Source of the DNA: Octopus sinensis
Lineage: Eukaryota
Direction of reading: 5' to 3'
Length of the DNA stretch: 64,000 bases
Assembly: GCF_006345805.1 (NCBI RefSeq)
Contig: NC_043008.1
Coordinates: 34,038,001 to 34,102,000, forward strand
The translations under genes were made by a program, and so were the position numbers. The notes beneath the pieces were generated by a model. It did not search any database and was not told the DNA's origin. It was given only the letters and a program-made list of their open reading frames with translations. Positions 3,330 to 32,184 of the stretch are shown here, piece by piece; the first letter of the stretch is position 1, and each line of letters opens with the position of its first letter.

Positions 3330-3375
3330 ATGAATCGCATTTTCATTTTACTTTCTCTCCTGCAAATAGTTTATA
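3330..3375 (+). CDS. First coding exon of the secreted PLAT/LH2-domain gene: signal peptide MNRIFILLSLLQIVY(S)
   Basis: Acceptor tttgtttactttcAG at 3325-3326 (implies an upstream UTR exon), ATG at 3330, hydrophobic core IFILLSLLQIV, strong donor GTAAGT at 3376; ends phase 1. Confidence 0.7.
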
Positions 3376-3834
3376 GTAAGTATTCTAACTTATAACTTCT
3401 TTCATGAATTCTTGAAATATTAATTTTCATCTCATCAAAAACATAGACATCGATTCATTTCTGTTTTACATAATGTTACATTCTTATATTTCAGTTGCAT
3501 TATCATAATTGTGTGTGTGATGTGTGTTTGTGTGCATGTGTGTGTGCGTGTATGCATACACACATGCATATATGTGTGTGTGAGTTTGTGTGTAAAATGA
3601 AACAAAATATAAACGAGTGTTTTACCTTTTACTCTTTTAAGTCATTGGATTGTGGCCATGCTGGGGCACTGTCAAACAAATCAACCAGAACACATACTTT
3701 TTTTTAAACCTGGTATTCATTCTATCAGCCTCTTTTGCTGAATCGCTAAGTCATGGTTATGTAAACAAACCAACACTAGTTGCCAAGCAGTGGTAGGGGA
3801 CAAATACAAACACAAAAACAGATCCACAAATCAA

Positions 3835-4000
3835 TATACCATATTTTATAAGGAACCCTCGTGTATAAGGAACTCCCTAATTTTGGGGGCTTAAAATTTG
3901 GGAAAATGGTTTTGTGCTATCCATATATAAGAAACTCCCATATTTTTAACCTAATTTTTGAAAACAAAAGGGTTCCTTATACATGTTATAATAGGGTATA
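3835..4000. mobile_element. Small MITE, pogo/Tc1-like
   Basis: Imperfect inverted ends (tatacc..tataaggaaccct / agggttccttata..gggtata) in TA context. Confidence 0.5.
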
Positions 4001-4002
4001 TA

Positions 4003-4204
4003 TGAGGTGGAGTGCTGAAAAGTCCTGGCTTTAAGGCTTTCCTGAAAAGCCTGGCTGGAGGCCCAAACTTAAAGGTCTTTTGCAGGGTTTAGAAAAACTG
4101 AAGGACCATTGCATGAAAGGGGAATACTTTGAATAAAATTTTAGTTAACTAATCCTCCTGTATTTTCTCTTACCCAAAGCCAGGAACTTTTCAGCACTCC
4201 CTCA
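4003..4204 (+). mobile_element. Mariner-derived MITE
   Basis: TIRs gag..gagtgctgaaaagt.cctggcttt / aaagccaggaacttttcagcactccctc; remnant of the transposase end (ggggaatactttgaataa). Confidence 0.65.
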
Positions 4205-6413
4205 TGTGTGTGTGTGTGTGTATCATCATTACATCATCATCATCATTTAGAGTCTGCTTTCCATGCTAGCATGGGTTAGACAGTTTGACTGAAACTGGTA
4301 AGCTGGAGAGCTGCACTAAGTTCTAGTCATGGCATGGTTTCTAAGGCTGGATGCCCTTCACAACACCAACCACTCCATAAAGTATACTGGGTGCCTTTTA
4401 CATGTCACTGGCATGGGTCCCAGTTACGTGATACTTGCATCAGTCAAAACTCTGATTTCATTTGGTTTGATGAGTTTTCTCATGCACAGCAAATTGCCAA
4501 AGGTCTCGGTCACTTGTCATTGCCTCCATGAGGCCCAATGTTCAGTTATGCATTCCACGTGCATTTTATGTGTCAGTTATGTGACATTAGCATTGGCCAC
4601 AACTACTATTCCACTTGGCTTGATGAATCTTCTCAAGCACAACACATCACTAAAGGTCTTGGTCAATTCTCATTGCCTCAATGAGGCCAACTATTTGAAG
4701 ATTATGCTTCACCACCCTATTCTATGTCTTTCTGGGTGTACCTCTATCACAGGTTCCCTGCACAGTTAGAAATCAACATTTCTTTACCCACCTATCCTCG
4801 TCCATATGCATCGCATAACTATAGCAGTGAAGTTGTCTCTCTTGCACACCACATCTGATGCCTCTTATGCCCAACTTTCCTCTCAAGATGCTTACACTCT
4901 GTCGTACATGCACACTGACATTGCACAGCCAGCAAAGTACATTAACTTCATTTCTTTCAAGCCTATGCATGTCCTCAGTGGTCATCGCCCATGTTTCACT
5001 ACTGTGTAGCATGGCTGTTTATACACAGACATCAAACACACTGCCTTTCATTCTGTAAGAGAGGCCCTATGTTACCAACAGAGGTAGGAGCTCTCCGAAC
5101 TTTGCCCAGCCTATTCTTATTCTATCAGTTATTCCCCAGAGCATCCACTTTGGCTAATGACTTGCTCACATTGATAATGGATGCTATCAACTACTTTTAG
5201 GTGTCCTCCCTGGTATTTGCTGAAGTCCATTTTCTGAACATTTTTAGTGTTTATTGTAATTGTACACCTTCCACATTCAAAATCTATTTCCCCTGTTAAT
5301 CTTCGTCTGATATTGCTGCACTTCTTATGTGTCCATAGCTTGTACATCTTATGGAGTTTCTACTTACGCCTTTTCCACATACTGAGGAGGGCCATCTATA
5401 TGAAGGAATTTGTGATTGGTTCACTTTCCTAGGATCTAGGATCTTGGTTTTTGCTAAATCAACTTTAAGTCTCTTTGATTCTAGATCTTGCTTCCACACC
5501 TAAAATTTCTTCTCTAGTTCTGGTAGTAATTTGGCAATAAGAATAAGGTCATCAGTACAGAGGAGCTCCCAGGGACAGCCCGACTTAAATTCCTCTGTTA
5601 TTGCCTGGAGGACTATGAAGAACAAGAGGGAGCTGAGGATTGATCATTGGTGAACCCTTACTCATACCCTGAATTCATCGTAGTAATTGTTGCCAACTCA
5701 CACCTTACTGAGAGCCTCTCTGTACATGGCTTGTACAGCTCTAATTACTCCACATTGACCACCAGATAAGAGAGTGGGAGACCCTGTCAAAGGCTTTCTC
5801 CATATCAACAAAAACCAAGTATAGAGGTTTATTTTTGGCTCAGTATTCCTCCTTCAGCTTCCTTACCAGAAATATAGCACAGGTGGTGCTTCTCCCTGGC
5901 ACAAAACCAAACTGTGTCTCATTTAGACTAACTCTCTTCCTAATTAGTTGGGCTACAACCCTCTCTATAACTTTCATTGCCTGATGCAACAATTTGATAC
6001 CTCTGTAATTATTTCTGTCTAAGCTGTTGCCTTTACCTTTGAGCAGCTGACAATAGTGTTGCCATACCAGTCATTTGGTATAACTTCCTCAGGTATAACC
6101 TGAGTAACTAGACTATAACCAACACTGTCAGGTATTTTAAACATCTCAGCAGTGATTCCTGATAGGTTGGGGGCTTTCCTAGTCTTCATATTCTTCATGG
6201 CTTTATCTACCATGCTACTGTCTGTTCTGATTGGTAGGCAGACTTTCCTTCTCCCATGAGTTCATTACATTTAGTAGCCTTTCATAATGGCACTTCCAAG
6301 CCTCTTGTTTTGCGGTGTCACTAATTACCAGTGAATCATCATCCATGTGAATACACTTTTTCCCAACAACATCACAGTTTTCCGTGGCCCACTGTTTTGC
6401 AAACCAAAACACT

Positions 6414-8479
6414 TGTAGGGTTAAACGACCGTATGTAAGGAGTTGGCGACAAATGTCTCCTTTAGAATGCCGCACGGTCGTTCCCTAACATAAATAAGAA
6501 AGCCAAATACATGGATATAAAAAACAGTGCCAAAGGAATGAATGATGACAACAAGCCGTTCTACTGTTTGAGAGAGAAGAGGACTTTATTTACAATGTGT
6601 ACAATGAGAGTGTGTGTGAGTGTTAGCGAGGTGTTGTGTATGTGAGCATGCGACAAGTGTTTGTGTCTGTGTGTCCGTGTGTGCGACAGAAGGTACAAAT
6701 AAAGGTGCATGCATATAACAGAGAACAGAGCATAAGATACATCTCAGCATATTGAGTTAAGATAGAGTTAGTTTACCAGTTCATGAGTTACACAATAGTA
6801 AGTTCTATAACAAGATGTTGTGGCTCATGTGGCAGAGCCGGTTACTACACATGTAGAAGTTGTGGCTATCATGCCGTACCGAGTCTCTTGATATAGATAG
6901 TTCTTTTGGTAGACTGACTGTTTCTTCTCGGTGAAAGATTCACACAAACAGCGTGAGTTAAACTTGGTCGAGTCGTTGATGTATACATGTTGAAATTGAC
7001 GGAGATGTAGACGACGATGGTGGAGACAACGTAAAGCTGTGGGTGTACATTAGCGTTGTCGTAGCTGAAGCAGGAGCATGGCTGGCAGGCTGGTCGTCTG
7101 TCGTTGGAACTGGAACATGGCTGAGTAGCGCTGTGATCAGTGGCTAGACCTTAAAAGGTCTAAATCCGAAAGACGTGGGCGATGTAAGTACCGGATACAT
7201 TCAAAACAGTGTTTTTTTTTATATATGGAGGGGTTAGAGTTAGGGTTTCTATTAGGGTTAGGGTGGGAAAAAAGGGGGATCTTTTCCTTTTGAACGGCAG
7301 TTTTCAACACAATTTCCAGTTAACTAATCACTTTTAAACTTCGTATACTGGTAGAATGTGTCAAAATAAAACATTTTTTTCTCTTGGTTTTCTTGAGAAA
7401 ATTGTAATTTGTAAGTTTAATGTAGTTTAATTTTTCGAATTTTAACCAATCCTGTGCCCTCTTTTGAGCTAAAATCATTTGCTGCGTCTAAAACTGAGAC
7501 AACATCCTGTCACTAACCCTAACCCTCACCCTAACCCAAACCCTAAATTTTAGCCTTTCGTTTTTTTGTCTTAATTGTTAAATTAATTTAATTGTTACGT
7601 GTGTGTCTAAAATTATTCGTTTTGTTTTTGTTTTGAGTTTTTGCTTTCGTTTTAGCCTTTTGTTTTTTTTTTTTCTTAATTGTTAAATTAAAATTATCTT
7701 CCATTGATTTCGTTTTAGCCTTTCGTTTTTTTTTCTTAATTGTCATCCTTAAATTAATTTAACAAATAAAAAAAAAACAAAAAATGAAAGGCTAAAATTT
7801 AGGGTTACGATTAGTGACAGGATGTTGTCTGTTTTAGACACAGCAAATGATTTTAGCTCGATAGAGGGCATAGGATTGGTTAAAATTCGAAAAAGTAAAC
7901 TACGTTAAACAAACGAATTACAATTTTCTCAAGAAAGCCAAGAGAAAAAAATGTTTTATTTTGACACATTCTACCAGTATACGAAGTTTTAAAGTGTTTA
8001 GTTAACTAGAAATTGTGTTGAAAACTGCCATTCAAAAGGAAAAGATCCGACAAGGGTTTCTGTTATCTTCAGAAATGTAAACAAAGTCACCCTAACACAA
8101 ACCCTAACCCTAACCTTAACCCTAACCTTAACCCTAACCCTAACCCCCATATATATAAAAAAAACACTTTTTTGAAATGTATCTGGTACTTCCGGAAGTA
8201 CACCAGTACTTATATCGTAACATCGCCGAATAGGGTGTAGTGAAAATGCTAGCCTATTTAAGGAGTTAAACTGGCTCAAAGAAGGGCATCTTATCCGAAG
8301 GTCATGATTGGTTGGCTTTACACCCTGGCGCAAAATAAGTAGAGAGACAACTCGCGCTAGATGCCAACCAGTCAGAGCAGTGGACACAACAGGGTCAAAC
8401 TAGCCAAAGATGGTTGTAATCTCAAACAAAATCATTCTTATTGTGTCTCCCAAAGAGTGAGGATATCAATATCGCTACA
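6414..8479. mobile_element. Solo LTR, Gypsy-type, interrupted by a fold-back element
   Basis: Ends TGTAG...CTACA; 4-bp TSD CACT at 6410-6413 and 8480-8483; AATAAA on the - strand near 6585. Confidence 0.75.
7178..8227. mobile_element. Fold-back/MITE with long inverted arms and TTAGGG-like arrays; inner MITE 7277-8048 has GGATCTTTTCCTTTTGAA termini
   Basis: ggcgatgt...acatcgcc outer ends; 7277-7560 is the inverse of about 7790-8048; (CCCTAA)-like runs at 7515-7545 and 8100-8146. Confidence 0.85.
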
Positions 8480-9139
8480 CACTTCAAGTCACTGGTCTTC
8501 ATGCTGCAGAACATTGGCAAACTTGTTCCCTTTTGCTTTACCCCTGGCTTCCCTTTTAGTTGTCTAATATAGACAACTTGCTACTGCCACACTTCCTGTC
8601 CTTCCAAGTCTATTTCTTTACTTTAATGGTCCTGTCAGCTACACTGTTCCACCACCACATCAATCTTGGCCTAGTTGGGACTTTGCACCTAGTTATTCCT
8701 CTACTGCATTCTTCACATCTTCACCAAACTGTAGCCATTAACATTCAGACTTTCTGCAAGCATTTCATTGATATTGTGCTTCAAAGCTTCAATACGGTTG
8801 TGTCAGGCATTCCAAGAAAAATACATACATGATGCAAAACGCTTCAAGTAAGGTATAAAATCCCTAATGCCTACTCCAATTGCGATCTCATTTCATGGAC
8901 TTTCATTTATTACTAACTGCCAAAGTTGTGTTCAAAAAGATTTATTCATTACTCAAGTTCTTAATATCATATCATAAACTGCTAACGAAAATGGTAATTA
9001 TACATTTTACGCTTATCAACTTGAAGCGACTTCCTAATGCGGGCTAATTCAACTTAAACCATCCATACTATTATATATCCAACATACAAGGATATAAAAA
9101 AATAATAGGTTTATTAAAAGAAATGGAAAAATAAGCGAT

Positions 9140-9620
9140 GAAATTATTTGGTTTAACCCAAGTTTCAATTCGCAAATAAAATCAAAAATAAGTCAGGAAT
9201 TCTTCTGAGCATTAGATAGACATTTCCCAAAATGTGCCAAATATCGCAAAATTATCAACAGGCATATGTGACATCTCATGGGAACACCGAAATATGTATA
9301 CACTGGTGGTTCAAGAGACACCTTGAAAAATCGTCTGCACCACTATATTACGTCATTTTCCAATGTAAACAAAAGGTACTCCACATTATTATCTAACCTC
9401 ATCTGGAGGTCTAACATAATTGAATGGAGTATTTGACAAACTGATGTACAATAAAAAATGCTGCACCATACACTAGAACATCGCAGGTTTTATGCATAGG
9501 AAAATCCCTGGAGATCCTCACATCCAGTGAAAACATAATTAATAGACACTCCAAAGTAATCAAATCATGTAAGCATAACAGCAAGGTATCATTCCTCGAA
9601 TTCGAGAAAAACACTAACTG
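9140..9620 (+). mobile_element. Degenerate Penelope-like element (RT thumb/linker plus GIY-YIG endonuclease)
   Basis: IWFNPSFNSQIKSKISQEFF*ALDRHFP..RKIINR; YTGGS..LKNR..STLLSNLIW..INRHSKVIKSCKH. Confidence 0.75.
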
Positions 9621-10265
9621 CCTTTAGCATATAATAAAAAACGAGAGGAACATATTAACAACTAAATGAAACAACCATTATCCTTACATGCTATATGATA
9701 TACCATTATACCACCAAAAGTAATTAAAAGGACATTTTAACAGAAAATCTTTTGTCAACTCAGACAAGGAACTCCAACAACTGAATAGTCTTACATATTG
9801 ACTTTACTACATCTGAATTTACCAAGAGGCCGCCTGCTATAACTAAAGTCAAACCAATGAACTATACTACCCATCCTGATATCTGCATACTCCAATATCA
9901 AAATGAGTCTAACATCACCACACACACACCTCTTCTCTGCTTTATAACTACCATTCCTTTCTCTCTCTCCATCATTTTCTATTCCTCCCTGCCAGATACA
10001 CACAGAAATGCCCTCATACCTCAATCAACCTTTACATTGATCAAAATTGATAAACAAACCTCAGTTATACATCTACTGCTTACATCAACAACATAAATGC
10101 TATATCGCCTGAAGTAATGAAAGCATGAATATGATCCACCTGATGTCCATGGATTCTACGGACAGTACTGTGATCATCCCAGGGATACAGACTATGATTG
10201 TAAAAAACGTGATTTGTAGAAACGTGCATAGTGACGCATTAAAATATTTATAAATTCCATCCATG

Positions 10266-10266
10266 G

Positions 10267-10313
<47 letters not shown>

Positions 10314-10327
10314 CATTATCATCATCA

Positions 10328-10403
<76 letters not shown>

Positions 10404-10410
10404 TATCAGT

Positions 10411-10499
<89 letters not shown>

Positions 10500-11030
10500 T
10501 GAGTGAGTGAGAGAGCAGCGTATGCAATCAAAGTGACACTGGGATAAAATATACCAAGCCCAATATACCTATCATGACTATCAATCTGATAAGGGTACAC
10601 TGGGTACATTACATTACAATCATTCCCCTTTGTATTCTACATTACAATCATATGTGCATGACATTGTGATCTTATATCAAGAGAAACAGGACATAACCTT
10701 GCAGGTGGGCTCAGTTAGAATTTTCTTCAGGTTGAGTAGCCCATCCTGCTCAAAAGGTCCCTGAATAGGTTTGTTGAAGGATGATGCACAAAACACCCAT
10801 GTTTCCAGAGGTGAATTATTCAAATCCCAAATAATTCCTTTCAACACATGGCTATGATGCTCCCCCACTACTTCTGCTCACGACCAGAAATTCACATATC
10901 GTCAGCCACCAAGGGATATGCTCAACTGGTTAAGATCAAACAACTGAAAGCAAATCTGTGGTATTGAGCAGTAGCCCATCATTTATACCAAGACATAACA
11001 ATGTACATGATAATACTTCCAATCAGTTAA
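10266..11030 (-). mobile_element. Third copy of the LINE-tail family with a compound (ATT)n/(ATC)n microsatellite at 10266-10498
   Basis: Reverse complement matches about 1330-1820; microsatellite sits at the 3' end. Confidence 0.75.
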
Positions 11031-12284: not shown

Positions 12285-12720
12285 TAGAACTTACTGTGGA
12301 CAAGGTTGCATGGCGTTTGATTATAAATAAATAAAAAGTATTCATGAAGTACAGGACATCACCAATGAGTGAAAAATATGTAAACAAACTAGAGACAAGT
12401 ACAGGACAAAATACCAAAAGAAGGTAACACTCCTCATCAGTTGCTGACTGTTTTACTACTCCCTATTTCGTGCTTTCAATGACAAGATAGGAAAACTTTA
12501 TGCTCAGCAGCATCCAGAAATATTTAAAATATAAAATTTGTGAAGAGTTAGGGTTTTGAACGAACGAACAACAACAAAGAGGATGTACAGAGTAAACAAT
12601 CAACAAAGACAACCATTAAGGGCCAGTAGTTAAAATGTACAGAAAACAAAAGACAAAGACAAGTGACAGCACAACAAGTATTATTATGATGCTTGGGAAA
12701 ATTGTGTGCATATGAGAGTA
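12285..12720 (-). mobile_element. Non-autonomous Penelope-like (pLTR-type) repeat; related copy at about 30975-31700(+)
   Basis: Shared cgaaa.atag..gta..aaacag.c..caactga.ga.g block next to (TA)n. Confidence 0.45.
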
Positions 12721-12796
12721 TGTGTGTGTATGTGTATAAGTAACACAGTGCATGCACTATGTGGAGTGGTGTTTGTTCTGTGTATTTATGTATACA

Positions 12797-15282
12797 TAAA
12801 GACCGTCTAAAAACAACTTGGATGCATCCCCGGTCCAAACATTGGCATCTACTTGACTATGTTCTTGTACGCCAGCGGGACCTGAAAGACGTTTTACACA
12901 CAAGAGTGATGCCCAGTGCAGAGTGCCACACCGACCATCGCCTTGTCCATTGCAAGCTCAAACTGCAGTTCAAACCCAAACCCAAGAAGAAAGGTAACCC
13001 CATAAAGAAACTCAATGTCCACAGCTTGTTCCGGGAGGAAGTGAAAATCAAGTTCCAAGCAAACCTGCAGCAAAGATTAGATGAATCCCCCTGCACTGAT
13101 GACACCACACCAGACACCTTGTGGGAGAACCTGAAATCAGCCATTCTTAAGACATCTATGGAAGTTCTCGGGCACACAAAGAAGAAAATCAAGGACTGGT
13201 TTGATGAAAATGACAAGGAGATCCAGGAATTACTAGCAAGGAAGAGGGCTACCTGGCGTGGAGAACCCAGCTGTGCGCTGACCTCGGAGACTATAGAGGC
13301 TTCTATGAGGCTCTGAAAGCAGTGTATGGCCCCACCCACCTGGCCCAGAGTCCCCTACGCAGTTCAGATGGACAAGACCTCCTCACCGATAACAGCTCCA
13401 TCTTCGCTAGCTGGTCCGAGCACTTCCAAAGCCTTCACATTCCTCAACTTCCACTCAAAGAGGAGCTCAACGAACCACCCACCCTCGAAGAAACGATTGA
13501 AGCCATAGGACAACTCAAGAGTGCAAAGCAGCAGGAGTTGACGGCATCCCACCAGAAATCTGGAAAAATGGAGGTCCGATGCTCCATGACAAGCTCCATG
13601 ATTTTCTTGTCTGCTGCTGGGAGCAGAGCAAGCTGTCACAGGATGTTTTTGATGTCGTCATCATAACCCTGTACAAGAACAAGGGTGAAAAGTCTGACTG
13701 CTCCAACTACCGGGGAATCACCCTACTCTCCATCGCCGGCAAAGTACTTGCCAGGATCTTGCTCAACAGGCTAGTACCAACCATCACTGAAGAAAACCTC
13801 CCCGAGAGGCAGTGTGGCTTGAGAGCCAACAGAGGCACCACGGATATGGTGTTCGTCCTCCGCCAACTCCAGGAGAAGTGCCAAGAACAAAACAGGGGAC
13901 TCTATGCTACTTTCATCGACCTTACAAAAGCATTTGACACAGTGAGCAGGACAGGACTATGGCTCATCCTGGAACGACTTGGCTGTCCCACCAAGTTTCT
14001 ACAGATGGTGATCCAGCTGCATGAGAATCAGCGTGGTCAGATCAGACTCAATGCTGACCTGTCAGAGCCCTTCCTCATTTCCAACGGCGTGAAGCAGGGT
14101 TGTGTCCTGGCACCGACTCTCTTCAGCATCTTCTTCAGCATGATGATCAAGCATGCAACTGAAGATATGTAGGATGAGGATGGGGTGTATGTTAGGTATC
14201 GTCTGGATGGCAGTCTCTTCAATCTACGGCGCCTCCAATCCCACACCAAGACCCAGAAGAGGGTGATCCGAGACCTTCTCTTCGCAGACGACGCTGTCCT
14301 TGTCACCCACACAGAGCGAGCTCTGCAGCGCATCACGTCCTGCTTTGCAGACGCCTCGCGGCTCTTTGGCCTGGAGGTCAGCCTCAAGAAGACGGAGGCA
14401 CTTCACGAACCTACACCCCAAGAGGAATACCGCCCACCCCACGTCACTATCTGCAGTACTGAACTGAAATCAATAGAGCAGTTTACATACCTGGGCTGCA
14501 TCATCTCATCCGATGCAAGGATTGACAGGGAAATTGACAATAGACTTTCTAAGGCAAATAGCTCCTTTGGCAGATTCTACAATCGTGTTTGGCACAATGG
14601 TGGCCTGAAGAACAAAACAAAGATCAGTGTCTACAGGGCCGTGGTTCTCACCACTCTTCTCTACGGCTCAGAGACCTGGATCACTTACCGCAGTCACATC
14701 TGTCTCCTTGAGTGCTTCCACCAGCGATGTCTCCGCACCATCCTCAACATTCACTGGAGTGACTTCGTCACAAACATTGAAGTCTTGGAGTGGTCCGAGA
14801 TACCCAGCACTGAAGCCATGCTACTAATGTACCACCTCCGATGGGCAGGGCATGTCTCCAGAATGGAGGACCATCACCTTCCAAAGATTGCCCTGTTTGG
14901 TGAACTCTCCACCGGCCACCAACCGAGAGGAGCTCCGAGGAAGCACTACAAAGACTGCCTCAAGAAGTCTCTAACAGCATGTCAAATTAACCCCCAATGC
15001 TGGTCAGACCTGGCTGCGGACCATGATGTCTGGCGCCACATGATCTTCAACGCAGTCAGCAAGTTTGAGGAACAAAGAAGAGATGCACTTAAAGACAAGA
15101 GACGCAGGAGGAAGGCGTGAGCTGCATCTGACACCACACTGGATATTACCTTCATCTGTGGACACTGTTCAAGGACCTGCCTTTCCCATATCAGACTTGT
15201 CAGTCATGAGCATGCATGCATGCGACATGGACAGCCTTTCTGATCTTCGTTCGCAAAGCCAAGCCATGAGATGAGATGAGAT
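12797..15282 (+). mobile_element. 5'-truncated RTE-BovB-like LINE (end of APE domain, RT, C-terminal zinc finger), frameshifted
   Basis: TTWMHPRSKHWHLLDY..TDHRL, NYRGITLLS, FIDLTKAFD, GVKQGCVLAP, LLFADD; C..C..H..H-type finger after the stop at 15118-15120; (ATGAG)n tail. Confidence 0.92.
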
Positions 15283-15848: not shown

Positions 15849-16161
15849 ATCTAGATCATTAGCATAATACTACAGGTAAAAACAACCATTGACATGAAAG
15901 ATACAACTAATATTCAGAAAATCTTTGAAATAATATTGATTTTTAATTTTGATTTCTAATATTGGCACAAGGCCAGCAATTTTGGTGGAGAGTATATGTC
16001 CATTTCATTCAACCCAATATTCAACTAGTGCTTATTTTGTTGACCCTGAAAGAATGAATGGCAAAGTTGACCTTGGCAGTCATTTGAATAGTATCAATTT
16101 TTCATCAAATTAATTTAAGTTTTTTTTCCAATTTCTGACACTAATTATAATAATTCTTCAG

Positions 16162-16233
16162 GCTCTGTGGATTGGAATAAAAGTTACAAAAGCGCAAAAG
16201 ATCTACAAATACAGAACAATACAACGTCAAAAG
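16162..16233 (+). CDS. Stalk exon copy 1, (S)SVDWNKSYKSAKDLQIQNNTTSK
   Basis: ttcttcAG acceptor, GTATGT donor, 72 nt, open in phase 1-1; lies in copy 1 of a triplicated unit. Confidence 0.65.
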
Positions 16234-17552
16234 GTATGTTTCAAAATAATATATATATTAAGCATATTTGTAGTGTGCTACCAAATCAGATATTTATTTG
16301 TTTAAATTTGTGCCATTATCTATTTCAATCTTAGTAAAATATTAATAAACATATGGAGACAGCAAATTCAGGAAATTACACTTCCATTGTTTTTCGAAAA
16401 TTGCAGTTACTATCAATTGGTTACAACTCCTGACCGATGTGTCATCATTTTTTTCTCATGAGTTAGAATTTGGGCTCAAAATGTACAATGCTGGAACAGC
16501 TACATCAAGGCAGCCTATCCTATTCTCGAATAATTCTGCCAAACTCCTAATTGAGACTTGTAACATTCTTTTATGAACCCCAAACAAATGAGAGTCAAGA
16601 CTGATTCCAATGGGATTTGAATTCAAAGAGCAAAGATTTGCAACAAATACTAGAAAGCTTCAGACTAGTACCCTGTTGAATCTGACAGTTCAGTATGTAA
16701 TAAGCACTCCATTTGTCTCTATCTGGTTGAGGCAATTAAGAAATTTCCTTTCCATGCAGGTCGATTAATCTACTGGTAGCAGTAATAAAATAATCAATTT
16801 GTATCAAATTCATTTTATGCAATTATCAATCATGTTTTATATATCAGAGACATGTCCATCATTGCAAGTGATCAAGATAATGTGACCTGCCAACCTCAAA
16901 ACACGGTATTTGTATTGGGAATCATGTGTTGGAATATCTACAGATGGGGTACCTCTACAGTAGGCCCTATTAAATGTTTCATATCGCATAAAAGCAAAAT
17001 CCAAATTTTGTATATCATTCAAGTGTTGTCGTTGCCAGTGCCGCCAGACTGGCTCCCATGCAGGTAACACATAAAAAACACCTATTGAGTGTGGTCATTG
17101 CCAGAACTGAGTGTTGTCATTGCCCCTGTGTCAGTGGCACGTAAAAGCACTTACTACACTCTTGGAGTGGTTGGCATTAGGAAGGGCATCCAGCTGTAGA
17201 AACTTTGCCAGATCAGATTGAGCCTGGAGCAGCCTTCTGGCTCACCAGTCCTTAGTCAAACCATCCAACCCATGCCAGCATGGAAAGCGGACGTTAAACG
17301 ACAATGACAATCTATTGCTTTTTACATAGAGAGGGACTAGTTTTAAAAACATTACGAGTTAAAGCAAGTTTTAAACAAAATCCAAAAACGAAATTAAACC
17401 AAACAGTTAAATTTATACTACACTTAATTACAGCCATTGATATGAAAGACAAGATTTAATATTCTGAAAATCTTTGGACATATATTAATTTTTCCTGTAA
17501 TGAATTTAAGTTTTTCTCCAGTTTCTGAAAGTAATTATCTACAATCTTTTAG

Positions 17553-17627
17553 GCTCTATGGATAGGAATTATCCAAGTGCCACCAGCACAATGGATTCAC
17601 AAATACAGAATGAACTAAAGCCAAATA
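17553..17627 (+). CDS. Stalk exon copy 2, (G)SMDRNYPSATSTMDSQIQNELKPN
   Basis: tcttttAG acceptor, GTATGT donor, 75 nt; open in phase 1-1, stop in phase 0. Confidence 0.65.
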
Positions 17628-20223
17628 GTATGTATTAAAATAATATATGTTTTAGGCATATTTGCAGTATGCTTCTGAATTGAATGTTGTTTATTTTTTT
17701 AAAATCTTGTGCCATCATCTACTTCAATTTTAGCAACATATTGATAAACATATGGCAACATCAAATTCAGGAAATTACATTTCTATTGTTTTCCCAAAAT
17801 TGCAGTTACTATCTATTGGCAACAAATCCTGACAAAAGTGTCACCATTTTTCTGTGATGAGGCAGAAATTGAGTGCATGGGACATCCCATTCTATTCTCT
17901 AACAATTCTCCCAATCAACTACTCCAGATTAGTAACTTTCTTATATTCACCCCAAACAGATAAAAATTAAGGTCAAGTTTGATCTCAATAGGATTTAAAT
18001 TCAAAGAGCAGAGAATTAGAACAAATACTGCCAAGCTTTCAGTCTGGTACCCTATTAAATCTGACACTTCAGTGTGTAATACGTACACTGAGCTGCTTAA
18101 TAAGTTTCCATTCCATGTAAGCTGATGAAGGTGTTTTTAACATTTTAAAATGGAATAGTATTGGTAATCATGGTATTTGTATTGGTAAAACATGGAATTT
18201 GTATTGGTAATCATGTGTTGGAATATCTACACAAGGGGTATCTCTACAGTAGGATCCATTAAACATTTCATACCACTTGCATAAAAGCAAAATCCAAATT
18301 TTGTGTACATCCATTGCTTTTTACATAGAGAGGTACTAGCTTTAGAAGCATTACAAATTGAGTTAATATAAGTATTAAACCAAACAGTGAAAATTATCAG
18401 TTATAATTGGTGTCCAATTTTGGCACAATCCAGCAATTTCAAGGGAAGGACTAAATTGATTTGAACAACCTAAGGGCTCAACTGGTACTTATTTTATTAA
18501 TCCTAAAACAATGAAAGTCAAAGTTAACCTTGCCACCATTTGAACTCAAATGTGAATATGAGTGAAATACTTCAAAGCACTTTGTCCAGGGTCATAATGA
18601 TTATACTGGTTCACCACACTTTATTAAAAGTACAGCATTAAAGTCACAAATGTTTAAGCAAATCTCCCTTAAAATTCATGTTAAGGGAGGTTACTTTTAC
18701 AGACAGAAGTCAGATTGCTTTTAAAAGGTAAGGTGCTAATCCACAGAATTAAAATGCAGAAAAAATTACTTGCGTTTTTAAAGAAAAATGTATGAAAGAT
18801 TTAGTGAATATCTTTGATGAGAATGCATTAGTAAGTTAGACAAAAATATAAGCTCAACTAAATATTGGAAACACAATCATTCAAGGTAGAAATGAAAATA
18901 TTTTCAATAATTTTAATTGCAGTTGATTATTTTGGTAAGCTGTAAGTAAAAATTGATTTCTATTTTCCATACCTGATTGGATAATGGTATGATATGGTTA
19001 GACCTTCTTTCATACATATTCCATCTGATACTGGTTTGAAATTAGGTGAAAATTAAAATAAAGTACATTTGGAATCATTTGGGATTGCTGTTCAGATTTG
19101 TTGCAAGTTTTTATTTCATAATTAAGTGAATTGTGATTTTCAACTTTCAATAACACTAAAAATCTGAGATCAAAGAGAATTAGTTGCATTGAAGATTGAA
19201 TGAATATCTCATTATAACAAATAAATCCAAACAAAAACATTGAAAACAGCAAAAAGTTACCTAATATGTGTTCTGCCTCTGACAGATTGCTTCAGTTGTT
19301 GAATAAAGAAAGGTAAGTACATGCAAATATACATCAGAGCCTTTATACCTTGCTGTTAATCATAAATGCTTCTTTTGGATATAATTACTTTATTTATGCA
19401 CAACATGTAGCACAGTTTATATTTAAATGTTGTTAAGTGTGCTACATGTAGGAAGTTTTGGGAAGTGCTACATTAAGTCTGCTTCAGTCCATTCAGCCGT
19501 AAAGAAGTGCCAGTAGCAAGTGGGATCAGTTAACCTTGCAATGGACTGGCAACATATTAAAGGAAGAGTTTTCTACTTTCACTCACATGAACTTTATGGA
19601 AATAAGGATCAATTTAGGCCTAATGGGCTTGTGAGATTGAGAAGAATAAAAGTTCATATCACTTGACAACTTGCATTATGACCTTAAATTTTATTCAGTT
19701 TGTTGAGATTTGTGAAGAAATGTACAAAATTTTTCTGTAATCTAGGAGAATGATGCTCTTTTCTTTACTGTCCACAAGGGGCTACACACAGAGGGGACAA
19801 ACAAGGACAGACAAAGGATTTAAGTCGATTATATCGACCTCAGTGCATAACTGGTACTTCTTTAATCAACCCCAAAAGGATGAAAGGCAAAGTCAACCTC
19901 AGCGGAATTTGAATCAGAACATAGCGGCAGACAAAATACCGCTAAGCATTTCACCTGGCATGCTAACGATTCTGCCAGCTCACATACTCTAAATAATATC
20001 AATCATTTCATTAAGATGATATTGATCTTAGACTGGAATACAAATTTTATTCCCAGGAATAACTCTGTTTTAATATCTACATTAGGGGTATAATACTACA
20101 GTTAATAACAGCCATTGATTTGAAAGGTAAGATTAATATTCAGAAAATCTTTGGACTAATATTAATTTTTCATCAAATGAATTGAAGTTTTTTCTCTAAT
20201 TTCTGACACTTATTATCTTTTAG

Positions 20224-20280
20224 GTTCTGTGGGTCAGAATTATCAGAATAAGACCAACTCAAAGTTTTCACAGCCAATGA
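20224..20280 (+). CDS. Stalk exon copy 3, (S)SVGQNYQNKTNSKFSQPM
   Basis: tcttttAG acceptor, GTACGT donor, 57 nt, open in phase 1-1. Confidence 0.6.
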   Translation, partial: VLWVRIIRIRPTQSFHSQ

Positions 20281-22182
20281 GTACGTATCAGAATAATATA
20301 TGCTTTAAACATATTTGTAGTGTGCTACTGAATCAAATGTTATTCATTTCTGTAATCTCGTATCACCATCTACTTCAGTCTTAGCAAAATATTAATAAAC
20401 AAATGGTAACAACAAATTCAGGAAATTGCATTTCCGTTGTTTTTCCCAAAATTGCAGTTACTATCTATTGGTCACAGATCCTGACCAAAGTATCACCATT
20501 TTTCTGTGATGAGGTACAAATTGAGTGTAGAATGCACAGTGCTGCAACAGATACATCAAGACAGAACATCCAATTCTGAAAAAATTATGCCATCTCCTAA
20601 TCTAGACTAGTAATTTTCTCTTATCAGCCCCAAACAAATGAAAAGTAAGGTTAATCTCAATGAATAAAACATCAAAAAAAGCAAATGTTATGTAGCAATA
20701 TCACATGTATTCTAGAAACGTTTCTGCTATCTAATTCAGTCTTAGAAAAGAATTAAAGGCATCCCAACTCTCTCTGTCTGTTTCTCCCCCCACCTCCCTC
20801 TCACAATTGCTATCTGCCCACTCTTCTTGATCTTCTCACTCCAGAGCCCAACCTGACACCTTGTTACCACTGTTTTTATCTCTTTTTCTAGATCCACCTT
20901 AATTACTTTCACCCACTCTTCTACGATCCTTTCTACCAAAGTCACAGAGCCTGAAATTTTAGGGGTTGGAACAAATCTATTACATCAGCCCTCAATGCTT
21001 AACTAGTACTTATTTCATTGACCCTTGAAAAGTAAGTCTGCTTCTGCTAAATTTGAACTCAGATCATAAAAACAACCAAAATACCACTAAGCAATTATGT
21101 TTTGCTTACCACCTTCTAACTCTTGTATAATGTGAACAGATTTGTATCTCCTTAACAACAAGAGACCTGTTCCAATTCCCTCTGTTGTACTCAAATGTTT
21201 CCTTACTTAGTATAGAACTGCCTCATTTTCTACTGTAGTTCCATTCAGCCTATGAAGATCATAGTCTTGTAGTCCACATGGCAAATGCAAGGACTCTGGT
21301 GCAATGAAAAAGCATCCAGTGCACTTTGGAAAGTGGTTGACACTAACAAGGACATCCAGACACAGAAACCATGCAAAAGCTGACACTGAAGCAGAAAGTG
21401 GTCCTCTGATACATCAGATTCTCTCAAACTATCCAACCCTTGCCAGCATGGAAGATTGATGTTAAAAGATGATGATGATGATAATGATGAAATCTCTGTG
21501 TGTGTGCGTGCACGTGCAGTGTGTAGCGTGCAGCGTGTGTGTGTATGCATGTATGTGCATGTGCATGTATGCATGTGTTTATGTGTTCACGTGCATGTGT
21601 GCATATTTTCTACTAGCTTATTAAATCCTTTTAATATCAATTAGATAATATTGTACAACTGGGGTACTACAGATGGTTCACCTCACTTAGCAACCAGTAG
21701 GAATAATATATAAATAAACTAACGTCATGGCTTTAAATCTTATCGTGCCAATGGCAACTTTGAAGAAAAATACTAGATTTGTCAAGATTTTACGAGAGTA
21801 GAACTCCAAAGAATATTAATTAATCAATTTTTAATACCTTATTTATCTTAGATTCTTTTATAATCTAGGCACATGGCCTGAAGTTTTGGGGAGGGGGCCG
21901 GTCGATTAGATCGACCCCAGTACATAATTGGTACTTAATTTATTGAGCCCGAAAGGATAAAAGCAAAATCGACCTTGGTGGAATTTGAACTCAGAATGTA
22001 AAGAAAGACGAAATACTGCTAAGCATTTTGCCTGGTGTGCTAACGTTTCTGCCAGCTCGCCACCTTCTTATTTATCTAAGATTGAAATATGAATTTTATT
22101 TCCAGTCATAACTCTATTTGAATATCTAATCCAGCAGAATAATACTATCATTTGCTTGAGGCTTAGAAAACAATAAATAAGC

Positions 22183-22899: not shown

Positions 22900-23626
22900 G
22901 ACCAAAGCCTCCCCACCAGAAATTACCAAAAACATGTAATGAAAAGAAATATTACAAGTAACTGCAGAATATGTGGAGATGGACAAGAAACAATAAATCA
23001 TATTATCTCTAGCTGCCCAGTCCTGGCTAAGAAGGAATATATTCACAGACATGACAGAGTTGGAACCTACATACATTGGAAGCTATGCCAACATTATGGA
23101 ATAACAACAGAAAAAAGATGGTATAGTCACACACCAGAAAAGGTCACAGAAAACGAGAAAGCAACCATACTCTGGGATATGCCGATACACACAGATAGAG
23201 AAATTAAGGCCAACAGACCAGATATAGTTGTCAGAGATCATGAAGAAAAAAAATGCTTTCTAATTGATGTATCAATACCGGCAGATGACAACGTGTCTCT
23301 AAAAGAAATGGAGAAACTCTCAAAATACAAAGACCTGGAAATAGAGGTAACTAGAATGTGGAACCTGAAAACAGAAACAATTCCTATCATAGTAGGTGCA
23401 TTAGGCATGATAAAAAAATATTCAGACAAATACATAACAAAAACACCAGGACTTACAAACACATATAACATACAGAAAATTGCACTACTAGGCACTGCGC
23501 ACATCCTACGCAGAACACTTTCCATACAATAACCATCAGAGCATCACAACAAATCACAGCACATACCCAAGGCACACAGAGCTGCGCTCGGTAGTGAAGT
23601 GAAAGCACGCTACAAAAATAAAACTA

Positions 23627-24832: not shown

Positions 24833-25089
24833 ATTACTGCTGGAGAATCACATTTCATATTTCAAACAGTTTTGGGGCTGGAACCTCAAATTATATCACT
24901 GTTCAATTAATCAATGATGAAACACATGTTTTCTCAAATACGTTATCTTGTGCAGATAAATGTGGAATGGGATCTCGACCAAGCTTTGATTTTCACACTC
25001 CACAAATTGATCCAGTAAAAGAATTAAAATTAAATGAAACAGTAAAAAATATCTTTAGGGAAATAGTATCTGCTTGGACATTGGAAAGT
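24833..25089 (+). CDS. PLAT/LH2-like domain, N-terminal exon (YCWRITFHISNSFGAGTSNYITVQL...SAWTLES)
   Basis: gtttcgtttcAG acceptor, GTAAGT donor, 257 nt with no stop, phase 1-0; the GAGT motif, alternating hydrophobic strand and W-x-L-E strand match the PLAT pattern (recognised by eye). Confidence 0.8.
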
Positions 25090-25583: not shown

Positions 25584-25614
<31 letters not shown>

Positions 25615-27150: not shown

Positions 27151-27915
27151 ACACTCCCAAAATTCTCCATCTACGATTCTTATGTAAATAAATGCACACA
27201 CTTGGGTGTATGCATCGACAGTTTGATTAACTCACTGATTCAACCACATATTTATAAATACTGGAGCTCTCTTAAACTCAAAGAGCTTTGTCACTTTGTC
27301 AGTGACCAGCTTGGGATCACTTTCTCAAGGGAAACACACACACACACACACATGCACACACACATACACACACACACACTCTTTTACATGTTTCAGTCAT
27401 TTGACTTTGGTCATGCTGAGTACTGCCTTTAGCTGAAGAAACTGACTCCAGGACTTCTACTTTGTAAGCCTAGTACTAATTCAATCAGTCTCTTTTGCTG
27501 AACTGGTAAGTTTCGGGAACATAAACACACCAACATCAGTTGTCAAGTGATAGTAGCGTGACTAACACAGACGCAAAGACAAACTTACATAAATGTATAC
27601 CTGCGCGCATGCGTGTGACTGCAAACATGTGTGCGCCTGCGCGTACGCACGTATGTACGTGTATGCGCACGCATATGCATGCATGAATAAATATATCGAT
27701 GCGCATGAGCATGCATGTATATATATGTATGTGTATGTAAAAACGTATGTATATGTCTGTATATATACATATGTGTGCGTGTGTGTGTGTTTGTATACAT
27801 ATTTGCACATGTATATGTATTTGTGTGCATGCGTACGTATGTCATTATACCTGCTTTCCTCCTCTCTGATTCCTACCTGTCATTAACCTATCACATACGT
27901 CTAACTTATATATAA

Positions 27916-28150
27916 CTAGAAGACAAACCCGGCCTTGCTCGGGATTAAAATAGTTTATTATTGTTTTACTTGTTTCGGTATTATAACCCGGTTTCATTCG
28001 GGTCGACGCTGGCCACATTTTAAGAGTTGACGAATGTAGCTCTGGAGGCCACGCGTTTCAAATGAGCAAACTCAAAATTGCTATGCAAACTCACCAGCAC
28101 TTTTAATATAGGTGTGCAAATTTTCAGCTCAATCCAACCACATATGCACA
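27916..28150 (-). mobile_element. Non-autonomous Helitron, 3' end at 27916
   Basis: On -: cccgagcaaggccggg hairpin then CTAG|T; body matches about 59995-60165. Confidence 0.75.
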
Positions 28151-28217
28151 CATTATATATATGCATACGCATTAAATATATATGCACATATATACGCATT
28201 ATATACATACATACACT

Positions 28218-28249
<32 letters not shown>

Positions 28250-28399
28250 CGCATTATGTATACATATGTATACACATATATATATATACACATACATATA
28301 TATTCAAATATCGATATATACTCTTTATATATATATAAATTATATATATATATATTTATATTTATACACACACACACACATATATATATATAAATTAAC

Positions 28400-28614
28400 A
28401 TAGTAAATATCTGATTAATAATATCTGTTATTATTGTGCGGTGGTGGTGGTGGGCGATAATAATTCACCGTTGTAAAAGCCCTGTAGCAGGAATATTTAA
28501 ACTTCAAGGGAGTGAAATATATTCCGACACAATATAATTATTTACTATTTTATTCCTCTCCATTAATCCCACTTGCGTCTGTCAACGTTTTCTGTCTATA
28601 GATACAGAAAGACG

Positions 28615-28648
<34 letters not shown>

Positions 28649-29630
28649 CTGAGAGAGAGGCTGGGAGAGAAAGAGCGACAGAGAGACAGCGAATACGGAG
28701 AGAGAAAGAGAAAACCGAACGCGAGAGTCTGAAGAGAGAAGCAAGATGAGATTTTCTCAAGATCAACAAAGGCATGTTGTAGCACTTAATCCTGGATCAT
28801 TAAATCAATGTTTTAACGATTAGAGTTCCAATAGAATAGCTCTCAGTAATAGACTACGTACAAATTCGTTCTTCACAACTCCTAAAGTTGTTTTCAGATA
28901 TGATCCATCCCATTCGTATAAAAATGATAACTCTCTCTAAATTGGTGTGCTAAACACAAATTGTCGTTTCTGTAGAGCTTTAAAATTTCCAAATGAAACA
29001 AATGGTATGTGCTGCTCAGGCGGTCAGGTAACATTGCCAGCACTACCAGCTCCTTCTCAACGTTTTATGGATCCTCTACAAGGCACTTCCATCCACTCAA
29101 AGGATTTTCTGAACAATATCAGACACTATAACTCTGCATTTCAAATAACATTGATTGCTGCATCTTAGAAGAGAGTTAAACATGAATTTACGCCGACGTC
29201 AAAGTTCAAGGACAAGTCTATCACCTCATTGGTTTCCTGTTACTCACAAATGGACAAATACAGTTCCTCCAAATTTACTTTATGAGTGATGGAGGACAAC
29301 AAACCCGAAAGAGGTGTCGAAATTTCAGATGATGAGCCGTGTTAGATATAGCGCCAACTGCTGCAAAAGAGAGTATATTCACTGACAGCTTTTCGGTGCG
29401 TTAAAAAATCACATAACACCCACCCCCAATTTTCCGTGACAGGTTGGGGCCTGAAATACTCTAAATGGACGCATAGCATGCTGCCTAGATGAATTAGCTC
29501 ATCATTTACTCCACAAATGTTTTGTTGTCAATGCTGCACTTTCCCATATCACCTGTTTCAACATAACTGTAATATATTATATAAAACTATACCATTTTAA
29601 TTTCGAGAAACACCAGGTATCTCTACTACT
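28400..29630 (+). mobile_element. Internally deleted Helitron retaining the RepHel N-terminus (coiled region plus zinc finger)
   Basis: IGVLNTNCRFCRALKFPNETNGMCCSGGQV, FLNNIRHYNSAFQ, KVQGQVYHLIG..FLQIYF; degenerate hairpin/CTAG-like end near 29605-29630. Confidence 0.8.
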
Positions 29631-30417
29631 TTATAGTAATTTGAAATCCTTGTATTTTTCCCTCCACTCAAAATTTACTACCAAAACCACTACTCACTTC
29701 TGTATCACCCCACCCATACATTTTCTATACCTATCCCTTAAAACACCCCTACTCACATATCTCACATTTTTGCACTCCTTACCTTCTCATCTTTTCCTAT
29801 CCTTCTCTCATCCTCCTATCACTTTATCTTAACCACCAACTTACACTCCTTTTCTCACTTCTTCCACCCTTTCTTCACTTTTTCACTCTATTCACTTTTT
29901 GTTCTTTCTCACCCTCTTTTTTTCTCTTTTCTCCCTTTCTTCCTCTCATTTTCTCTTCCTGTTTTCACTTTGAACTATCTTCTCATTCTAATCATATATA
30001 TCTCCTTCCCCATATATCCACAAATACTACCGATACATTCTCAAATTTTCATTCACTCCACAAAACCCTTTCGAACGAGCAACACTGAATTCATGGCTCC
30101 ATACTTTGAAATGACTGAACATGAACTGCTATTAGAACATACATACAATGTACAGGAAATTCTTTACCACTTCTATACACCATTTCCTCGAATAATGGAA
30201 CTGCAACTACAATATCTTTATACATCTTATTTCTCCTTTCATTCCCTTATTTCCCCTCTATATTCTCTATCTCCTCATTTTCCATAATTCGAACTCAAAT
30301 ATTCTCACACCGTCTCTGATTAAGGGATATCCGTAATATCCCACAAACAGCTGTAAGTCTATTTCCTTATAAATGTCCTGAAAACTCCTCTCAGCCTTGG
30401 CTTTCTTATCACATTTG

Positions 30418-30469
<52 letters not shown>

Positions 30470-30905
30470 CAAAGTGAAGTTGTAAGGTACCACACGAGCG
30501 GAAATATATATGAAAGAAGGTTTGAAAATGCAATTTTAAAGATGTTGATTCACTTGACCTTTTTCACTTTTTTAGAAAAATATTGTCAAAAGTAAAATGT
30601 AGAGCTTTGTATAAGCTTTGTTGTGTTAAGTACTGGTTGTCAGAAAAGTATTGAAATACATGTATACATACTTTGATAATAATAAGAAAATGTTAAAAAC
30701 AGTTTACAAGGAAATATCTTGAGAATATATTAAACAAGAAGTATTAGGAGCTCAAGATAAATGTTAGGAGTTCAATAAAAGTCATGTTTGGTAGTATATA
30801 TATACACAGAAGGAGATATAAGATATATTTGGGAGCTTACAAAGATGAACTGACCTGTTAGGACAATTCATCTGAAATTCTTTGTAAACTCCCAAATATA
30901 TTTCC

Positions 30906-30977
<72 letters not shown>

Positions 30978-31700
30978 ACAGTATTTAAACGTTCTAACAG
31001 AACGCGTTCTAAAAATAATCCGATGTAACTCTATCCTGTACTGTTCCTACTCTCTCCTAATGTCTCTCTCTCTCCCCCTTTTTTCCTCCCTCTTCTTTCC
31101 ACTTATTCTTTTCATCTTCCCTTCTCCTCCTTTCGTTTTTCTCACTCATCCTGTCTCTAATTCTTTTTTCTCCTCTTCACCATTTTTTATCTGTCTCTCT
31201 CTCTTTCTCACTATTCCTCCTTTACTCTGTCGTTGCTCACACGTGATCATCGGCCATCTTTCTTTTCTTAACTTGGGCTTCTTACTTTCCTTCTGGTGTG
31301 TTGCACAGATCAGACACATTTTTGTCTGTCTCCTCTCCTATCTTTTCTCCCGTCATAAATTGTCGCTCCACCGTTCGCCAGCTCACCTCGTCATTGCTTA
31401 GCAACCGTCACTATTTTGTTTTCACTGTCCTGTTTTTGTTAGCAGCTTTCACATTCTGCAAATCACACACTTTATTTCGGGTTGAAAGAGCAACTGTTTC
31501 CTCGAAGGCACTTCTTGTCATAATTGCTCGAAACATAGAGTAAATAAACAGCCGACAACTGACGAAGGGTCGTTCTTTATGTTACTTGTCTTGCTTTTTT
31601 CAGTTGGTTCTTTCGTTGTTCGCAAAAAAGTTCGTATTCCATGTTTTCGTATTTTCGTATTTCATGTTGCTTACGTTTTGTGACATCCTGTACCCATATA

Positions 31701-31765
<65 letters not shown>

Positions 31766-31923
31766 TATATATAGATCAATAAATGGTGGGTTGTGTTGAC
31801 CGCACGTGGAGAAATGATAAGCAAGGAAAAATTGTAAAAATGCAGAATGCTCGATTGAAAGAAAATTTTAATGAATTGATATATATATTCTTATATGATT
31901 GAACGCCACGCATCCATTTCCAA

Positions 31924-31966
<43 letters not shown>

Positions 31967-32090
31967 CATACATACATACATACATACATACATACATACA
32001 TACATACATACATGCATACATATATATATGTGTGTATGTGTGTGTTACATGCAATGTGTTTTACATTTTTATTCCAATTTTTTTTTGCAG

Positions 32091-32184
32091 ATTCATTTGA
32101 AGAACTTGAATACTTCAGCTACTTATAAATGCAAACTCGATTACCCTGATGCCGACAATAAAGACTGTAAACTAAAGCCCGAAG
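32091..32184 (+). CDS. PLAT/LH2-like domain, C-terminal exon ([31 protein letters not shown])
   Basis: Strong T-tract gcAG acceptor, AG|GTAAAT donor, 94 nt, phase 0-1; joins WTLES to give WTLESIHLKN...YKC, which completes the PLAT strands. Confidence 0.75.

Follow-up and report, generated by a model that had tools for sequence, protein, structure and literature searches.

Does a 64,000-nucleotide (nt) stretch of the Octopus sinensis genome, crowded with repeats, carry a cellular gene, and if so, what does that gene encode? The stretch (contig NC_043008.1, positions 34,038,001 to 34,102,000 of the forward strand; hereafter the window, numbered from its first base) is AT-rich (32–46% GC), has abundant microsatellites and retrotransposon open reading frames (ORFs) and has no long cellular ORFs, features that mark it as animal genomic DNA. 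An earlier note, made from the letters alone, had proposed that six small exons splice into a hidden gene for a secreted protein with an N-terminal PLAT/LH2 domain. We found that the gene is real, that its domain is a real though divergent PLAT fold and that it belongs to a lineage-restricted, fast-evolving family, such that the earlier interpretation was largely right. We consider it probable that the window holds one member of a gene family that is confined to Octopus and clustered in tandem, with a divergent, cysteine-rich, N-glycosylated PLAT/LH2 sandwich as its ectodomain.

Six exons on the forward strand, with AG/GT borders and phases 1, 1, 1, 1, 0 and 1, could be rebuilt as described, from the ATG at position 3330 to the final base of exon 6 at 32184. 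Together they comprise 601 nt without a stop, or 200 codons; all six acceptors are AG with a pyrimidine-rich lead, and all six donors resemble GTAAGT. The E values below, and those given later for exons, are from tblastn of independent predicted Octopus proteins against the window.

3330..3375, forward strand: exon 1, ATG and the signal-peptide-like MNRIFILLSLLQIVY; ends in phase 1
16162..16233, forward strand: exon 2, stalk unit 1, SVDWNKSYKSAKDLQIQNNTTSK; phase 1 to 1; match to P0001, E 0.002
17553..17627, forward strand: exon 3, stalk unit 2, SMDRNYPSATSTMDSQIQNELKPN; phase 1 to 1; the least-supported exon
20224..20280, forward strand: exon 4, stalk unit 3, SVGQNYQNKTNSKFSQPM; phase 1 to 1; match to P0003, E 2e-5
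24833..25089, forward strand: exon 5, strands 1–5 and the start of strand 6 of the PLAT fold; phase 1 in, 0 out; E 2e-38
32091..32184, forward strand: exon 6, the rest of strand 6 and strands 7–8 of the PLAT fold; phase 0 in, 1 out; E 2e-9

Five of the six exons match predicted Octopus proteins, exon 1 matching the N-termini of both P0001 and P0003 (E 0.001); the exception is exon 3, which was absent from every homologous protein found. Borders, phases, open frame and tblastn matches are far beyond chance and, at the level of sequence, identify exons 1–6 as a real multi-exon gene. The spliced product contains the YCW, SCADKC and YKC..DC motifs that had been reported, with five cysteines, and the seven N-x-S/T sequons of the full 200-codon model bear out the description of the stalk as rich in glycosylation sites. 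Its start, MNRIFILLSLLQIVY|SS, has a small residue at −1 and Val at −3, and this signal-peptide-like N-terminus is conserved in paralogues. An acceptor (ttcag) lies 3 nt ahead of the ATG, and the model of the O. vulgaris protein CAI9731026 (P0003) joins an upstream exon to the same acceptor; a 5′ untranslated exon is therefore expected upstream, beyond the window. Further PLAT copies in the window were sought by tblastn and none was found.

The identity of the domain encoded by exons 5 and 6 was assessed from sequence profiles and predicted structures. The Pfam PLAT profile (PF01477) matched the window domain at 17.5–17.6 bits (E 0.007, profile positions 6–96 of 117), below its gathering cut-off of 23 bits, and a GxGT motif after strand 1 and a Trp that opens strand 6 align with this profile. 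AlphaFold2 modeled the window domain together with six relatives as eight strands (predicted local distance difference test, pLDDT, 76; predicted template modeling score, pTM, 0.69), and an O. bimaculoides domain without a Pfam match was modeled with the same strands (pLDDT 74, pTM 0.69). The lowest-confidence segments were loops (residues 15–19 and 72–79). When both models were compared with the Protein Data Bank (PDB) using Foldseek, the best 50 matches were all PLAT-bearing (E 4e-5 to 9e-4, TMq 0.57–0.79, probability 1.00) and comprised 12-, 5-, 8R-, 11R- and 15-lipoxygenases, lipoprotein lipase, pancreatic lipases and related proteins, and Rab6IP1. The claim of a PLAT domain thus holds for the predicted beta-sandwich, but not by HMMER against PF01477, where the score stays below threshold. 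As modeled, the domain is a divergent PLAT/LH2 beta-sandwich, clear in structure and weak in sequence.

Automatic annotation points elsewhere, because UniRef names the O. bimaculoides relatives P0001, P0007, P0008 and P0009 ‘Ig-like domain-containing protein’ and a 10-residue segment of the domain resembles the E–F strand motif of immunoglobulin (Ig) domains, as would fit an ordinary Ig-superfamily surface protein. However, no full-length relative has an Ig-family Pfam match at E ≤ 1, Ig structures are absent from the best 50 Foldseek matches of either model, and both the spacing of the first and last Cys (97 residues) and the eight-strand order suit PLAT rather than Ig, which makes an Ig domain very improbable. 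The PLAT assignment corrects the automatic ‘Ig-like’ label and offers a fold for Octopus proteins listed as ‘hypothetical’ or ‘Ig-like’ without domain annotation.

The distribution of the PLAT-fold domain was assessed by phmmer of the 118-amino-acid (aa) window domain against 1.84 billion representative proteins. There were four real matches (E 8e-101 to 4e-5), of which Octopus was the sole source, in line with the suggestion of a lineage-restricted family. One further match, to a 2582-aa bacterial repeat protein (P0004), was discarded as a chance match of low complexity. Word-indexed homology searches returned nothing for the window domain and nothing at E ≤ 0.01 for the family alignment; both are uninformative, as the same database contains the relatives. 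In O. vulgaris the relatives are four consecutive gene models on one chromosome (CAI9731026–29), and in O. bimaculoides they carry the neighboring numbers LOC106876757 and LOC106876762 (isoforms XP_014780935 and XP_014780936). The LOC106876762 locus (L002) also has a tail exon of the preceding gene upstream and a signal-peptide exon of the following gene downstream. As judged from this gene order, the family is tandemly clustered. Its members bear public names such as ‘hypothetical’, ‘uncharacterized’, ‘development 2-like’ and ‘Ig-like domain-containing’; no precomputed Pfam domain is listed for any of them, and none has a described function or recognized domain in public annotation. The family is accordingly less hidden than had been thought, since relatives are annotated in both O. 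vulgaris and O. bimaculoides, if only as hypothetical or ‘Ig-like’. We found no mention in the literature of LOC106876762 or of PLAT domains tied to octopus biology.

The relatives share a signal peptide, a stalk exon, a two-exon domain with phases 1/0/1 and a linker, with 68–82% identity in the domain, and the window copy fits this pattern, for which a domain identity of 65% or more was required. Paralogues hold one, two or three copies of the domain, joined exon pair to exon pair, which shows that the pair bounded by phase-1 introns is a duplicable module, as had been predicted. LOC106876762 comprises signal-peptide and stalk exons, three PLAT exon pairs of identical phases, a linker and a short terminal exon (ttctttcag|TGATCGCTATGTGA, ‘VIAM*’). 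This paralogue has isoforms with two or three PLAT modules and, ending on that short exon without an anchor, would be secreted. Six cysteines are conserved in the domain across the family; in the window copy one of them is replaced by His, at domain position 55, which leaves five. Single-Cys losses also occur elsewhere, in the O. vulgaris orthologue (Cys3), in P0002 (Cys55) and in domain 2 of P0006 (Cys44).

CAI9731026.1 is the orthologue of the window gene, and its locus in O. vulgaris (OX597825.1:33.82–33.93 Mb, here L001) is collinear with window positions 180–45130 at 92–98% nt identity; on this alignment the window locus is orthologous to the gene for CAI9731026. On L001 the protein maps to exons 1 and 4, part of exon 5 and exons 6 and 7; beyond these come a pair of short exons rich in Ser and Thr, one transmembrane exon (ITIILCSVLIPTIVLLCMLCIIVT) and a tail encoded by two exons, in which ND.Y..[VI] motifs recur. 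The gene ends 26 kilobases (kb) past exon 7. P0005 and the 5′ half of P0010 have linker, transmembrane segment and tail arranged in the same way. The O. vulgaris model is that of a type I surface protein, as predicted from its sequence. The secreted layout proposed earlier consequently fits the anchor-less LOC106876762 paralogue, but not the O. vulgaris orthologue and two neighboring models, which run on through a Ser/Thr stalk into a single membrane-spanning helix and a cytoplasmic tail.

These models also contain errors. CAI9731026 uses an internal AG in exon 5 (gtgcag|ATAAATG; window 24950–24958, L001 ~39660) that deletes the first three strands of the domain, probably an annotation artefact because exon 5 is kept whole in the RefSeq models of O. 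bimaculoides. A peptide of a long interspersed nuclear element (LINE), MEVLGHTKKKIKDWF..., as in window 12702–15281, forms a false N-terminus on CAI9731027 and CAI9731028, both of which fuse neighboring family genes. The analysis thereby exposes LINE-derived N-termini, fused neighbors and a domain-truncating internal acceptor in the O. vulgaris annotation. The tail region of L001 (92637–92972) has more tandem ‘ND.H.V..GAC..END.YS’ units than the annotated protein holds, which suggests a repeat-expanding tail.

The full-length relatives also bear on whether the six exons begin a conventional gene for a PLAT-bearing enzyme or channel (a lipase of the pancreatic type, a lipoxygenase, a polycystin or LOXHD1) with the rest outside the window, which the position of the 3′ end beyond the window would allow. 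The relatives (242–434 aa) lack lipase, lipoxygenase, REJ/GPS and multi-pass membrane domains, and the O. vulgaris gene finishes 26 kb past exon 7, where just one transmembrane helix and a short tail close it. Elsewhere in the window, the remaining long ORFs are all transposon-derived and none encodes lipase-, lipoxygenase- or polycystin-type domains. A conventional gene of this kind is therefore extremely improbable, and the outcome that the earlier note had named as fatal to its proposal, an ordinary lipase- or polycystin-family gene, is not what we found.

The 3′ end, reported before as not found, was partly recovered as a seventh exon, with no later coding exons within the window.

41554..41648, forward strand: exon 7, linker, AHVREPTIPYT / YDSTQNIMTDSEENTSASVL; two tblastn high-scoring segment pairs in different frames, aligned to L001
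41822..41835, forward strand: decayed homologue of the short terminal exon (‘VIAM*’), with acceptor cac instead of cag

Compared with O. vulgaris, exon 7 lacks 24 nt, a loss that keeps the frame, and also lacks 1 nt of a TTT run near 41585. Read on from exon 6 it gives ...KLKPEAHVREPTIPYTYMTVPRT and then TAA at 41607–41609, 39 nt before the donor; the local sequence has no alternative acceptor or donor in the correct phase that would rescue the frame. The homologue of the ‘VIAM*’ exon lies ~170 nt beyond exon 7, and its acceptor is cac in O. vulgaris too. O. vulgaris exons 8–12 (Ser/Thr, transmembrane and tail) were searched for with tblastn (word size 2) and blastn (word size 7), and none was found in the window. 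As assembled, the gene could encode a 218-aa anchor-less, secreted glycoprotein; otherwise it could be a recent pseudogene or reflect a single-base assembly error. If the 1-nt gap is such an error, the gene would run on past base 64000.

The remaining exons differ from O. vulgaris to varying degrees. Exon 1 differs by 1 nt, which is nonsynonymous, exon 3 has two nonsynonymous changes, and exon 4 has a 6-nt in-frame indel. Exon 2 is identical, yet its donor in O. vulgaris is TT and not GT. The O. vulgaris model uses exon 4 alone of the stalk exons; the window copy has three intact ones. In exons 5 and 6 there are 22 nonsynonymous and 2 synonymous differences (dN 0.084, dS 0.029, ratio 2.9), a ratio that is not significant (Fisher p 0.19), and the flanking introns are 82–96% identical. 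Across the family, dN/dS ranged from 0.7 to 2.9.

The stalk exons themselves stem from a local triplication.

15850..20650, forward strand: three tandem copies of one genomic unit, each with one stalk exon, at a spacing of ~1.4–2.7 kb

Flanking intron sequence is 75–84% alike among the copies and the exons just 57–71% alike, with indels among the exons of 3 and 18 nt that preserve the frame and with splice sites retained in all copies. Exon 3, a paralogue of exons 2 and 4, has kept its frame and splice sites. This pattern of divergence is the behavior of coding exons under weak or diversifying constraint.

Several results weigh against a functional member of an Octopus PLAT-fold family. The PLAT call rests on predicted structures derived from a shallow alignment of 7–8 sequences that are ~70–80% identical, the sub-threshold PF01477 match was obtained for one of eight family domains (the other seven had no match at E ≤ 1), and a search of PDB sequences with the family profile gave no match. 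The O. vulgaris models used for comparison are automated and partly chimaeric, P0006 and P0010 beginning in a LINE fragment and fusing two genes. Exact look-up of ten candidate splice isoforms in a collection of 15 billion protein sequences found none recorded. Exon 7 is frameshifted, a conserved Cys is lost at domain position 55, the last 22 kb of the window has no transmembrane or tail exons and is also where collinearity with O. vulgaris is lost, and dN/dS ≥ 1 is equally seen in pseudogenes.

Much of this would be explained if the window copy were a dying or dead family member, with recognizable exons but no functional protein made in this genome. The 1-nt deletion and premature stop in exon 7, the replacement of Cys by His, the excess of nonsynonymous differences, the absence of exons 8–12 with collinearity ending after 45.1 kb, where a LINE sits, and the lack of an exactly matching recorded protein are all consistent with such decay, and the orthologue too has lost Cys3 and the exon 2 donor. 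Nevertheless, AG/GT borders are retained in seven of seven exons, the frame is open through exons 1–6, and indels in the stalk exons, exon 4 included, are all multiples of 3. Only 4 of the 19 amino-acid differences between window and orthologue affect any of the 58 positions that do not vary among seven paralogous domains, against 9.6 expected (hypergeometric P 0.005), such that substitutions avoid family-invariant positions, unlike free drift. The stop, 39 nt before the exon 7 donor, would escape nonsense-mediated decay under the usual 50–55-nt rule, which makes a stable secreted form possible, and an assembly error could account for the deletion, which sits in a TTT run. We regard a pseudogene as unlikely, though a prospect to be taken seriously, and favor a member of the Octopus PLAT-fold family.

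For this family, we compared variability between the two tips of the sandwich, as defined by the predicted strand order. Loops at the ‘top’ tip (b1-2, b3-4, b5-6 and b7-8) were 28% invariant with a mean entropy of 0.80, compared to 71% invariant and 0.24 for those at the ‘bottom’ tip (b2-3 NDET, b4-5 IDPVK and b6-7 NLNTS; Fisher P 0.006). The variable loops are rich in aromatic residues (e.g. SNSFGA / SRKLLS / SSNYFS and NIFREIV / HFWNGLT / NFFKKFT). Together with the avoidance of family-invariant positions, these differences argue that the modeled domain has been under selection. The family-wide dN/dS and the conserved core imply fast change focused on one surface, and this combination of a variable tip and a conserved core suggests a recognition surface.

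Outside the gene, the window is occupied by transposable elements and simple repeats.

53109–58065, forward strand: near-complete non-LTR (long terminal repeat) retrotransposon with zinc-knuckle ORF1, AP-type (apurinic/apyrimidinic) endonuclease, reverse transcriptase and zf-RVT, in several frames
12702–15281, forward strand: LINE reverse-transcriptase fragment (RVT_1, E 7e-25)
42760–43200, reverse strand: mariner-type transposase fragment (Pfam Transposase_1, E 1e-4), just 3′ of exon 7
22939–23532, forward strand: ORF of 197 aa that contains a zf-RVT motif and corresponds to the C-terminal portion of a retrotransposon ORF2
10192–10527, 27536–28403, 31776–33121 and 62385–63106: microsatellite and low-complexity tracts (AAT/ATC-type, TATG/CATA-type, CA/TA)

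Collinearity with L001 stops at 45.1 kb and the near-complete LINE is at 53–58 kb, within a stretch (45.1–60.8 kb) that has no collinear counterpart in L001. In place of the LINE fragment at 12702–15281, the orthologous O. vulgaris intron has ~410 bp (L001 27043–27452). The ORF2 piece at 22939–23532 has copies of 98–99% identity elsewhere in L001 (12.4–15.3 kb), which indicates that the element was recently active. Window positions 60883–63990 match L001 segments at 72.6, 61.0 and 37.8–35.8 kb in reverse orientation with 85–92% identity, and part of this region is the counterpart of a 2.8-kb piece absent from the window near 22.3 kb; these matches could be dispersed repeats or a local rearrangement. 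In the mechanical ORF list, the microsatellite and low-complexity tracts produce spurious ORFs of the poly-N/D, poly-I/M and ‘YIHT’ kinds.

In animals, PLAT/LH2 is known as an accessory domain, through which lipoxygenases, lipases and polycystins are brought to membranes or partners. The Octopus domain has the same eight-stranded beta-sandwich of ~115 residues as PLAT of lipoxygenases and lipases (TMq as above), and the PLAT domain of lipases is likewise extracellular. It differs from them in having just 8–18% identity and a sub-threshold Pfam score, in occurring alone or in tandem without a catalytic domain, in its six conserved cysteines and two conserved N-glycosylation sequons, and in its position on a mucin-like stalk with a transmembrane anchor. 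Among apicomplexan LCCL/CCp adhesive proteins, which are extracellular or secreted and multi-domain, an LH2/PLAT module is one of many adhesive modules, whereas in Octopus it is the sole folded module and is duplicated; no sequence relation between the two was detected. The window copy differs in turn from its Octopus relatives, which carry transmembrane and tail exons or 2–3 PLAT modules with a ‘VIAM’ exon, in lacking Cys55 and in its frameshifted exon 7.

The layout is less unusual than the earlier note held, since plant PLAT-plant-stress proteins such as AtPLAT1 already combine a signal peptide with a single PLAT, enter the secretory pathway and have no catalytic partner (PMC4232524). A lineage-specific expansion is described for Medicago nodule-specific PLAT domain proteins (NPDs) in the references listed in PMC12612560. 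Octopus and these plant proteins are alike in architecture alone, sharing signal peptide and PLAT, and no plant protein, including the plant PLAT family cd01754, was matched by phmmer among the 1.84 billion representatives. The plant proteins are localized to the endoplasmic reticulum or symbiosome, unlike the anchored or secreted layouts in Octopus. To our knowledge, neither transmembrane tails nor tandem PLAT arrays have been described for them. For animals, a literature search of limited reach turned up no report of a type I membrane protein that carries extracellular PLAT modules, whether stand-alone or in tandem.

In the spliced model, the seven exons code for a signal peptide, as many as three duplicated stalk units, one PLAT-fold domain (split in phase 0 and bounded by phase 1) and a linker. 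The domain would be displayed outside the cell as an extracellular binding module. Contact with a target may occur through the four loops of the variable tip. Our default guess for this target is a membrane or lipid surface, and a protein partner is equally possible, by analogy with colipase or GPIHBP1, which are protein partners of lipases. In 5-lipoxygenase, Trp13, Trp75 and Trp102 serve membrane binding and Asn43, Asp44 and Glu46 bind Ca2+ (PMC5113960). The Octopus family has a CxxxC loop in place of the Ca2+-ligand loop. We take the membrane-binding Trp residues and Ca2+ ligands of 5-lipoxygenase to lie on the same odd-numbered loops as the variable tip in Octopus.

A hypervariable tip with a conserved core and a conserved opposite tip in the predicted fold is, we infer, the pattern expected of a diversifying recognition protein, whether immune, gamete or chemotactile. 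The Tyr motifs of the predicted tail suggest signaling or endocytosis, although their spacing is not that of a canonical immunoreceptor tyrosine-based activation motif. Tentatively, and with considerable doubt, we propose that these are private PLAT-fold recognition receptors of Octopus, distinct from Ig, leucine-rich repeat and fibrinogen types, in which tandem arrays, exon-pair multiplication and a hypervariable tip under diversifying selection would be combined with alternative 3′ exons that yield membrane-bound forms, with a Tyr-motif signaling tail, and secreted forms. Such receptors might recognize microbial or other foreign membranes or gametes, or serve contact chemosensation.

In this family, PLAT would be the sole folded module of a surface or secreted protein, with extra cysteines and glycans to stabilize it, exon-pair duplication and tandem clustering. 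Evolution appears fast at the very tip by which lipoxygenases bind membranes. The family is thus a candidate lineage-specific recognition system in cephalopods, a group whose immune and contact-sensing receptors are poorly known.

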